Origin: Podarcis muralis
Taxonomy: Eukaryota
Reading direction: 5' to 3'
Assembly: GCF_964188315.1 (NCBI RefSeq)
Contig: NC_135668.1
Span: forward strand, 30,504,001-30,568,000
Length of the DNA: 64,000 nucleotides
Made by a program: the position numbers and the translations under genes. Of this stretch, positions 50,846 to 53,800 are shown one piece after another. The stretch's first letter is position 1. Every line of letters begins with the position of its first letter. The notes under the pieces were generated by a model. The model searched no databases. It worked only from the letters and a program-made list of their open reading frames with translations, and had not been told where the DNA came from.

Positions 50846-53800
50846 GCCTGTGTTAGTGTACTCTTTAATATAGTTCAGTCCAGGTATGAGGTGGGAGCCT
50901 TGCAAAGCTTGTGCTGCCTGCCAAGTCAGTTCCTGGAAGGGGTAGAGGCATAGGGGGCCCAATGAGCTATTCCTTCCAAATCAACTTTAAGGGTGCCAAG
51001 CACAACTCCCTTGGACCTCTGTGTGTGAAATTTGGCAGGCTTCATCCCCTGAAAAGGGGATGCTAAGCTCACAGATTCCACCCATTTCTGCCTGAAAGGA
51101 GAAAAGGGTTAATAATTTGGTGCTCCCCTAGTATTGTTTTCTGTTATCAGCACCCCAATTTACAATAGCCCGATATTGGAAACAAAAGTGTAATTAAAGG
51201 CACTTCAAGGATAGACACTTTTGGTGATGTTGGCTTCCTTTCTTTTCCTTTATAAACGAGACGGAAGATACTTTTATTCCACTTTCAACACAGGAATCTC
51301 TGTGGAGAGGCTACTTGAATTGATAATACATAACTTATTGCATGTGCACTATGTACTACGTATGGAATTTAATAAGAATGGACCACTGGACAAGTTAATG
51401 TAGTTGTGTGTTCTTGTCTTTATTTAAATGAGAAACAATAAAAATCATTGGGGTGACTTCAGAAAGAGGTATTGTCTACAGCAGAGAATTGCACTGAATG
51501 AAGTGAGAGGCCTGCATATTAATTTGATGTCTAGCTGACTGGAAATGCAAGACCCCAGCAATGTGAGAGAAATGCTGTCGCTCACTCAAAGGGGCCGGAT
51601 GATGCACAAATGTTCCTGTGGGTGGGGTCGGAATATTTCACAAATCCAGAAGGTTTACTAAATCGAGAAATAAAGAGCCCACAATGTGGAGCCCAGAACA
51701 CACAGGGATGGCAACACATTGCTAATAATAAACAGGTGCCCTACCCGATCCACCCAGCTGTTTTCCAACTTATCGGGATGCTCCAATCACTCCAGGTGTT
51801 CCCGAGGAAATAATTTTTCTGGCGCACTTTAGCAAAGTGGATCGTTGCTGGCATGAGACTCCCTATGGCGATTTTAAGTTGCATGTCCGTCGTCATGCGT
51901 TTGCGTGCCTTTGGAGGGGGGGGGGGAACCGAGAAGCAAACAGGTTTACATTATGTGGTCCTTCCCACACCACAGGAAAACACTGGGAGGGGGTTCTTCT
52001 GGTGAGTGGAATTCTTCTCTTTCTCAACTTTCTATGGAAGGAGATAATTTTGGCATATGGTAGAAAATTGCTTTTGGACTCTTATGTACCAATGGACAAG
52101 GGAATGAAAGCTTTGTAGATGAAGTCAAAGGGCTTGAGACCAAATGACAGAAGGCTCCAGGGCAGAAGAATCTCCTTCCCTTCCTCCTGAGCCTGGCCAT
52201 TTCTCACCTGAGGGGTGGGGGGGACAGCCACAGCCAGGGACCTAGGGCTGGGCTCATTCCTCCATCCAGACAAGGAAGAAAAGATGCAATTCAGCCTAGC
52301 CAAAGAACTAGGAGTGTGTGGAACAGTAATGGGGCGGTGAAAGAGGCCTGGAAGGCTGCATCTGCCACCCCTTCCCCTAGGTTCTGTGATCCAAAGGAAA
52401 GCAATGGCTTGGGGCTGGTGGCCCTGATCTCAAGCCAGTCTACTCTGAGAAGTCATAAAAGCCAACCCACTGTTCTTGTGTGTGCCCCACTTGTGAGGGG
52501 CATAAAATCATCTGCCAAATATATTGTTATAGATTTAGGATAAACCCTAAAAATTAAGAAATGCTACTCCTGTAGTGATGGCTGAAAACCACATATACTC
52601 CCCTTTTCTCAAATGCAGCTCTGCACACTGGTCTGCATAGGCAACTAGGGCAATCTGCCTGTCTATTTTGCCACAAAGGGCAGCTGAACATATGTATTGT
52701 TGTGTGCATATGGTGGTGGTGGTGGTGGGGGGCAATGACTTTCACTAGAACAAATGGATTCTGTGAATGGTCCTTGATAGACATCAGAGAGACCAATGAA
52801 GGCACTTTCTCATGCAGAGCTGCCCAAAGAAAGTGTCATGGAAGGGCAGGGAAGATGCCATGTCAACCAGCATGAGGCAGAGCAGGGGGGTGGGGAGAGG
52901 GGTATTCTGAAACATCAACCTCTGCTCAGGACACATAAGGTCTCCCCCCGCCCCCCCCCCAGTCTATGTGGTTGTTTTAGTATTTTTAATTTTTGTTTTA
53001 ATGGCATTGTTTTAACATGGATGAGCTTACCACCCTGGGTTCCCTTTGGGAGGAAGGGTGGGATATAAATGTAATTAACTGATTAACAATAATAAATTTG
53101 CAGCACTATTCCAGGTGATTGTAGAGAGAGGAGCATGCTGGGAAGGTGTGCCTACCTTGTCCTCCAGCATGCCTTCTTGCCCAAAGGCAACTTCATAGTC
53201 TGTTTCCGAATTTTTATGGAGAATGCTCTCTTCATTATAGCCATCTTCCCAGGTGAGGATGTATCCGCCATCCCCCATCTTAAGTTTCAGGTTGACAGGC
53301 TGTCGGGGTTTCACTGCATTCGGGAAGAAGACAACAAAGAGAAGGATGTGGGGAGGCAAAAGGGGCCCCTGCTCGCCTCTCAGGGAAGACAACACGGGCC
53401 TCTGCTTTGTAAGGAAGGGCTGGTCAAAGCGGCAGACTTTTCACCCTGGAGGACAGACCTCAACCTCTCCAAGTTCTCTCCAGAACTGGAGTATCCCCCT
53501 CCAGGCACCTGAAGAAGGGGGCTCTCCATTGCCAAGGTTTCTGCCACAATAAACCTGCCACTGTTTAAGGTGGTGACTTTGCATAACGTACTAAGGCGGA
53601 TGCAGGAGTGGCTAAGGAAGGTCTCTCAGCATTGATTGGTGCTAATCGTGAAGACAAATGATCTGTGCCCACCACACTTGTATTCTGCTACTCTTGTCTT
53701 GTTCTTCAGATCAGCCTCTAAGGATGCACAAGAAGGATCTTGCAGACCAAAGGATCCCTTACCAATTTTACGAAGGTCCTCAATCTTCGTCTTCCAGATC

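Follow-up and report, generated by a model that had tools for sequence, protein, structure and literature searches.

The stretch studied here, 64,000 nucleotides (nt) of Podarcis muralis (contig NC_135668.1, positions 30,504,001 to 30,568,000; the window below), contains on its minus strand, in this order, NSMCE1, a partial copy of the interleukin-4 receptor gene IL4R, and IL4R itself. The partial copy, here called B, is a tandem duplicate of the ectodomain exons of IL4R (copy A) and is located at 58336-51741, just upstream of it. In a self-BLAST of the window 41335-47789 matched 51457-58390 with 71-86% identity and in the same orientation. The duplicated block contains the exon with the ATG and signal peptide together with the four exons of the cytokine-binding module (D1a and D1b of domain 1, D2a and D2b of domain 2, the last with the WSxWS motif; Table 1). 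We propose that B is a gene of the lacertid lineage for a secreted form of IL-4R-alpha, although the copy in this window carries two lesions.

Structure of the duplicated copy

The WSxWS exon of IL4R ends ..TGG AAA AAC G^GTAAGT at 41661/41660 (^ marks the exon-intron boundary), whereas that of B ends ..TGG AAA ACA GCT GGG TGG ATC GGG TAG, i.e. ..WKTAGWIG and a stop. The lost donor, the six extra codons and the stop had been described in the original prediction, which was made from the letters of the window alone, and comparison of A with B in the window confirmed them. The duplicated block had been placed to end near 51455, before the transmembrane exon; homology was found to end at 51457, and the transmembrane exon of IL4R lies about 1.06 kb past the A-side breakpoint. 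When the transmembrane and cytoplasmic exons were used as tblastn queries, matches were obtained in IL4R proper only (40275-40162 and 39824-39480) and none after B. Neither a hidden transmembrane exon nor another origin of the 3' block was found in the window by tblastn or sensitive BLASTN. A cryptic donor in B (GG^GTAGGG, 51745/51744) is in phase 2, as had been stated, and so are the IL4R acceptors at 44171 and 39798.

Searches were made with single exons or with the public 239-amino-acid (aa) P. muralis protein, and exons were joined only for frame checks, codon counts and simulation. A run of 200 N covers the first half of IL4R D1a, and copy A of the window was excluded from D1a comparisons.

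Table 1. Features of B and their counterparts in IL4R (positions in the window)
Feature	Position	Strand	Remarks
B ATG/signal exon, coding part	58254..58336	-	83 nt, frame broken
B D1a, first domain-1 exon	54303..54447	-	TAG^ acceptor and ^GTAGGT donor intact; Pfam IL4Ra_N
B D1b, second domain-1 exon	53763..53929	-	open reading frame intact; acceptor dinucleotide 53931-53930 is AA
B D2a, first domain-2 exon	53156..53313	-	both splice sites intact
B D2b (WSxWS), terminal coding exon	51741..51908	-	CAAAG acceptor; ..NTWSDWSIPISWKTAGWIG then TAG at 51743-51741
B 11-nt deletion site, six added codons and stop	51741..51761	-	ancestral G^GTAAGT donor gone
B probable 3' untranslated region, part 1, former intron	51457..51740	-	homologous to IL4R intron after D2b
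B probable 3' untranslated region, part 2, past breakpoint	51214..51456	-	no match in IL4R
IL4R (A) ATG exon	ATG at 47735	-	counterpart of B signal exon
IL4R (A) D1a	partly within N run 44978-45177	-	counterpart of B D1a
IL4R (A) D1b	starts 44171	-	counterpart of B D1b
IL4R (A) D2a	about 42976-42822	-	counterpart of B D2a
IL4R (A) WSxWS exon	41661..41811	-	working donor G^GTAAGT, GT at 41660-41659
IL4R (A) transmembrane exon	about 40175..40274	-	outside duplicated block; absent after every B copy
IL4R (A) Box1 exon	from 39798	-	outside duplicated block

The truncated copy in related lizards

Six B copies were compared, from three Podarcis genomes (the window, P. raffonei and P. lilfordi), Lacerta agilis and Zootoca vivipara (two copies). 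The window DNA is about 95-96% identical to that of P. raffonei and P. lilfordi. In the loci fetched from the relatives the order is KDM8-NSMCE1-B-IL4R, with B upstream of IL4R in P. raffonei, P. lilfordi, L. agilis and Z. vivipara and two B copies in the Zootoca stretch. In the alignment of the WSxWS exon, six of six B copies share the 11-nt deletion of the donor relative to IL4R and have the TAG at the same position, the sequence left by the deletion being ..GG(A/G)(T/G)CGGG TAG (GGCACCTG). A transmembrane exon was absent downstream of every B copy when the fetched loci were searched by tblastn. P. raffonei, P. lilfordi, L. agilis and the first Zootoca copy (B1) have all B exons open, AG and GT present, and a signal exon of 79, 85 or 91 nt (3n+1).

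A word search with one B exon found XP_028561840, a 239-aa RefSeq protein of P. muralis annotated as "interleukin-4 receptor subunit alpha-like", which ends ..WSDWSIPISWKTAGWIG (WKTAGWIG); CAI5792487 of P. lilfordi (240 aa) and a 210-aa P. raffonei model are in the same protein cluster. Intact orthologues with the same stop and no transmembrane exon are found in P. muralis, P. lilfordi, P. raffonei, L. agilis and Zootoca. The original prediction allowed for the copy having been a dedicated secreted receptor, or still being one in other haplotypes or species. The search of related genomes for an intact orthologue ending after WSxWS bore this out, the orthologues having kept the shared stop and a frame under selection (see below); neither of the two outcomes named beforehand as speaking against it, missing orthologues or orthologues equipped with a transmembrane exon, was seen. 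Because the same deletion and TAG occur in all six copies of three genera, B is, as judged from these alignments, a conserved gene design and neither a chance structure nor a private pseudogene.

Downstream of the B stop, 284 nt of former intron are followed by a 243-nt block for which no match exists in IL4R or in the rest of the window; Rfam gave no RNA family at 51000-52000. On the minus strand this block contains AATAAA at 51424-51419, ATTAAA at 51373-51368 and AATAAA at 51278-51273, the two AATAAA signals being located past the breakpoint as predicted. As AATAAA occurs 38 times on the same strand in the 64 kb, such motifs alone mean little. All three signals are however intact in each of the six B copies, and the block shares 97% identity with its Zootoca counterparts and 93-98% with Lacerta, compared to about 92% for introns. 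The sequence fits a 3' untranslated region of about 0.34 or 0.49 kb.

In a maximum-likelihood tree of 2.4 kb of intron sequence the A and B copies were each monophyletic with 100/100 support. Intron distances between A and B were 0.13-0.23 (three Zootoca comparisons reached about 0.3), while distances between genera were 0.07-0.10 and within Podarcis 0.01-0.02. Since the tree separates A from B and the A-B distance exceeds that between genera, a single duplication took place before Podarcis, Lacerta and Zootoca split, its age being roughly double that of the split. The locus of the gecko Eublepharis had no B: the gap between NSMCE1 and IL4R is only 1.75 kb there, with one exon set. In a search of 1.84 billion representative proteins, close short relatives were confined to Podarcis and Zootoca. 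Short matches from beyond Lacertidae (cuckoo, carp, coelacanth, tarpon) were considered as equivalent paralogues and rejected, being partial models or isoforms, and the gecko has one copy. We found no paper linking IL4R to Podarcis, to lizards or to tandem duplication, and a review of IL-4R evolution (PMC7274943) does not mention such a gene.

The Zootoca locus, at 883-7936 and 13484-18786 of the fetched stretch, is an array of B-like copies. B1 is complete; about 1 kb past its stop lies a fragment of an IL4R cytoplasmic exon, without a transmembrane exon. The second copy (B2) has lost D2a. The annotated products of LOC132593203/204 and XP_060138837 consist of domain 1 only, with an extra small exon and several isoforms.

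The predicted product of B is about 239 aa long in the relatives and about 57-59% identical to the ectodomain of the lizard's own IL4R. Pfam IL4Ra_N matched the P. muralis protein with 56.3 bits (cut-off 22.1) and the D1a exon of the window alone with 33.2 bits. The best phmmer match in PDB was human IL-4R-alpha (E 6.5e-12), over the entire ectodomain. In an alignment of 30 sequences C38, C48, C58 and C97 were invariant and C81 and C95 nearly so, and WSDWS is present in all B copies. An AlphaFold2 model of the P. muralis protein, made with this alignment, reached a predicted local distance difference test score of 87.1 and has two beta-sandwich domains, the last strand (230-233) being followed by a six-residue tail. 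Foldseek ranks 1-10 were all human IL-4R-alpha, with target-normalised TM-scores of 0.73-0.85, above IL-21R and IL-2R-beta. The predicted fold is that of a complete two-domain IL-4R-alpha ectodomain. B lacks the transmembrane segment and the Box1 cytoplasmic tail of a signalling receptor, and its product is predicted to be capable only of secretion, and not of signalling, because it has a signal peptide, no membrane anchor and no cytoplasmic tail. An own start codon, a signal peptide, a stop, no anchor and selection for intactness are all found in the orthologues, but not in the allele of the window.

Selection, proposed function and alternatives

About 11 indel events were counted in B exons, 10 of which are multiples of three, the exception being the +4 of the window itself; of the B intron indels 9/33 (27%) are multiples of three. 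When the observed substitutions were placed randomly, three lineages remained stop-free in about 0.1% of the trials (p about 0.001). Judged from these counts, the reading frame of B is held by selection. Between genera the B exons differ by 14.1-15.3% and the B introns by 8.1-8.2%, i.e. about 1.8-fold (Fisher p 4e-5 to 6e-7), and the nonsynonymous rate of B is about twice the intron rate. For IL4R there was no difference between exon and intron divergence. Concerted evolution of the introns was considered as a cause of the excess and rejected, as the introns group by orthology and not by species. The B exons change faster than their introns, and faster-than-neutral change points to positive selection. 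Pairwise ratios of nonsynonymous to synonymous substitution rates (dN/dS) among B orthologues were 0.9-2.4. Variable residues were over-represented in those loops whose aligned counterparts in human IL-4R-alpha contact IL-4 (24/38 vs 67/171, p 0.011; loops as in the 1IAR complex), an enrichment to be read as a lead and not as a test. The lizards' own IL4R shows rapid change at these loops as well, though less strongly.

We give a probability of roughly 0.6 to the reading that B is a lacertid-lineage gene which arose by partial tandem duplication of IL4R and encodes a secreted soluble IL-4R-alpha, binding and competition being assumed by analogy. According to this reading, the duplication would have put the ATG/signal exon and the four cytokine-binding exons between NSMCE1 and IL4R, and the 11-nt deletion would then have removed the donor after the WSxWS exon, making it a terminal exon with six extra codons and TAG. 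The 3' sequence with its conserved poly(A) signals would end the transcript, provided that B is transcribed and polyadenylated. The most probable action of the secreted product would be to capture the lizard IL-4/IL-13-type cytokine in solution, in competition with the membrane-bound IL-4R-alpha, like the recombinant and spliced forms of soluble IL-4R in mammals. On this reading its binding loops are under positive selection. In mammals soluble IL-4R antagonises IL-4 (PMC2259400), and by the same analogy we infer a role as competitor, buffer or carrier.

Several observations weigh against this reading. The first are the two lesions of the window copy, neither of which was spelled out in the original prediction. 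Its signal exon, 83 nt long, does not have the 3n+1 nt needed for phase 1, and a stop follows 42 codons after the ATG. Relative to P. raffonei and P. lilfordi, with which it shares a G6 run, the exon has gained 4 nt in a CCT repeat. To judge from its protein, P. muralis carries this insertion too but is one G shorter, so that the frame is restored there. No alternative in-frame start was found, the required frame opening after a stop at about 58390 without an ATG. The D1b acceptor reads AA instead of AG (CCAA^G), whereas the ten other aligned copies (five B and five A) have CAG^G. The only usable AG, one base further downstream, brings a stop into frame after 15 codons of the exon, and no alternative in-frame acceptor exists within reach. 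The remaining B coding sequence of the window is clean, with five residues that differ from P. muralis. The B copy of the window is probably a recently inactivated gene or a null allele, unless the lesions are assembly errors (one in a homopolymer, one of a single base).

Further points on the same side concern expression, annotation and binding. The ATG exon of IL4R lies in a CpG island (47500-48500; GC content 0.66-0.75, CpG observed/expected 0.76-0.92), which the ATG region of B (58000-58500) has lost (GC content 0.60, CpG observed/expected 0.29-0.46). Germ-line methylation of the B 5' region ever since the duplication would leave such a depletion. In both A and B a strong site resembling a splice acceptor lies about 35 nt before the ATG, and B probably needs an upstream non-coding exon. 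No transcript-derived fragments were found when the protein collection was searched with the domain-2 half of the P. muralis protein, nor by exact-sequence look-ups of that whole protein and of one of the Zootoca B-like proteins. The P. raffonei RefSeq model (210 aa) ends in the intron after D2a and not at the shared stop, so that annotation pipelines differ on the 3' end. Several residues by which human IL-4R-alpha contacts IL-4 are, on visual reading, not conserved in B, nor are they in the lizards' own IL4R. Finally, the mean dN/dS is near 1, a value which taken alone is also compatible with neutral decay.

It is unlikely, in our opinion, that B is secreted and functional but has another target, either as a decoy for a parasite or virus ligand directed at IL-4R-alpha, or as one soluble chain of a composite cytokine, of the kind known from IL-12p40, EBI3 or CLF-1. 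The high nonsynonymous rate, the enrichment of variable sites in the contact-aligned loops and the expanded copy number in Zootoca would all agree with such a function. However, no candidate ligand is known, and the weaker fast change at the same loops of IL4R fits co-evolution with a host cytokine equally well.

We consider it improbable that B is instead a decaying partial-duplicate pseudogene, in which the open tail after WSxWS is accidental and the RefSeq proteins are pipeline artefacts. The two disabling lesions in the window, the mean dN/dS, the Zootoca B2 copy without D2a and the lack of a transcript-derived match in the fragment search of the protein collection are what such decay could produce. 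Against this, five of the six copies, those of P. raffonei, P. lilfordi, L. agilis and Zootoca B1 among them, keep their exons open with intact splice dinucleotides. Save for the +4 of the window, exon indels are all multiples of three, stops are absent, and the stop codon and both AATAAA signals have been retained across three genera. Exons evolving significantly faster than introns would be impossible under neutral decay. The signature of a neutral pseudogene, with exon and intron rates equal and with random indels and stops, was not seen in the B copies outside the window.

An action of B through read-through or chimeric RNA, in which the cryptic donor is spliced into IL4R exons, as had been proposed, to give tandem-ectodomain or transmembrane-less fusions, or through interference with the IL4R promoter, is very improbable: the splice phases match, the GT is conserved and Zootoca B1 has its cytoplasmic exon fragment, but the GT needs no splicing role as it overlaps the conserved stop codon (GGG TAG), no annotated product uses this donor, every public IL4R model begins with the ATG exon of IL4R itself, the stretch separating B from IL4R contains conserved poly(A) signals, and fusion to 39798 would put a cytoplasmic tail on a protein without a transmembrane segment.

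Within the reading of B as a gene for soluble IL-4R-alpha, a more specific scenario is conceivable, although we are doubtful of it: that the contact loops are under recurrent positive selection, that copies were expanded in Zootoca and are lost, or segregate as a null allele, in at least one Podarcis lineage, and that B is a soluble regulator or decoy of type-2 immunity with a fast turnover, moulded by a conflict of host and parasite, to which no gene of mammals or birds corresponds.

The closest known analogue is mammalian soluble IL-4R-alpha, which like B has a signal peptide and a two-domain ectodomain, ends a few residues after WSxWS and lacks a transmembrane segment. The secreted IL-4R-alpha of the mouse also ends after a short stretch of novel residues. 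The mammalian forms, alternatively spliced in the mouse and spliced or shed in humans, are however products of IL4R, arising through inclusion of an extra exon or through proteolysis. B is a distinct, duplicated locus which has an ATG exon, a stop and a 3' end to itself. In design B resembles IL-22BP (IL22RA2), a stand-alone gene for a secreted receptor ectodomain only, which is a paralogue of a signalling receptor chain and a soluble antagonist. IL-22BP is however a class II cytokine receptor for another cytokine, ancient and shared across vertebrates, and not a recent tandem partial copy. In the IL-4/IL-13 system itself, IL-13R-alpha2 is a gene-encoded, non-signalling decoy (PMC7274943); unlike B it is membrane-anchored with a short tail, a paralogue of IL-13R-alpha1, and present in all jawed vertebrates. 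Duplicated IL4R genes occur in teleosts as IL-4R-alpha1 and IL-4R-alpha2 (PMC7274943). These differ from B in originating from whole-genome duplication and in not being truncated secreted forms. Both keep the transmembrane and cytoplasmic parts.

Soluble IL-4R-alpha is a natural and pharmacological brake on IL-4, and the species investigated to date obtain it from the receptor gene, as a by-product of splicing or shedding. If our reading is true, a separate, selected gene shows that evolution can hard-wire this brake, as it has with IL-22 (IL-22BP) and IL-13 (IL-13R-alpha2). The intact, expanded and broken versions in close lizard relatives would then be a natural experiment and provide a set of naturally varied binding loops, and B would serve to trace how selection acts on the type-2 (anti-parasite) immunity of reptiles, whose cytokine biology is almost unstudied. 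The gene models were already present in RefSeq under an uninformative "-like" name; new here are the interpretation and the evidence of selection, whereas the reading frame had been discovered before.

Variation of IL4R and neighbouring features

The WSxWS exon of IL4R in the window (41811-41661) encodes a protein sequence 100% identical to that of P. muralis and about 80% identical to that of P. lilfordi (10/49 residues differ; P. lilfordi locus 25281-25448). By this comparison, the ectodomain of the signalling receptor is also fast-changing in some Podarcis lineages. The IL4R of the window differs from the P. muralis RefSeq protein elsewhere, e.g. by 18 mismatches in the last exon, so that the window represents a fourth Podarcis genome, distinct from the P. 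muralis reference. The IL4R intron at 44172-44897 is nearly identical to that of P. raffonei (K 0.006; 23601-24326 of its locus), while the distance of the P. lilfordi IL4R intron from the window is 0.03 and that of the B introns between the window and P. raffonei 0.016. This discordance of IL4R and B intron distances over a 10-kb interval may reflect introgression or incomplete lineage sorting.

An intronless reading frame of 267 aa with an RRM domain (Pfam RRM_1, E 1e-12) lies on the plus strand at 24450-25253, between IL4R and the cytokine-receptor gene that follows; it resembles a retrocopy of the HTATSF1 type. Downstream of IL4R, exons of another class I cytokine receptor are located on the minus strand at 19876-20736 and 22790-22975. 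One of the two is a cytoplasmic-type reading frame of 286 aa with no Pfam match, and the other is domain-2-like, with 29% identity to the 239-aa B protein of P. muralis.

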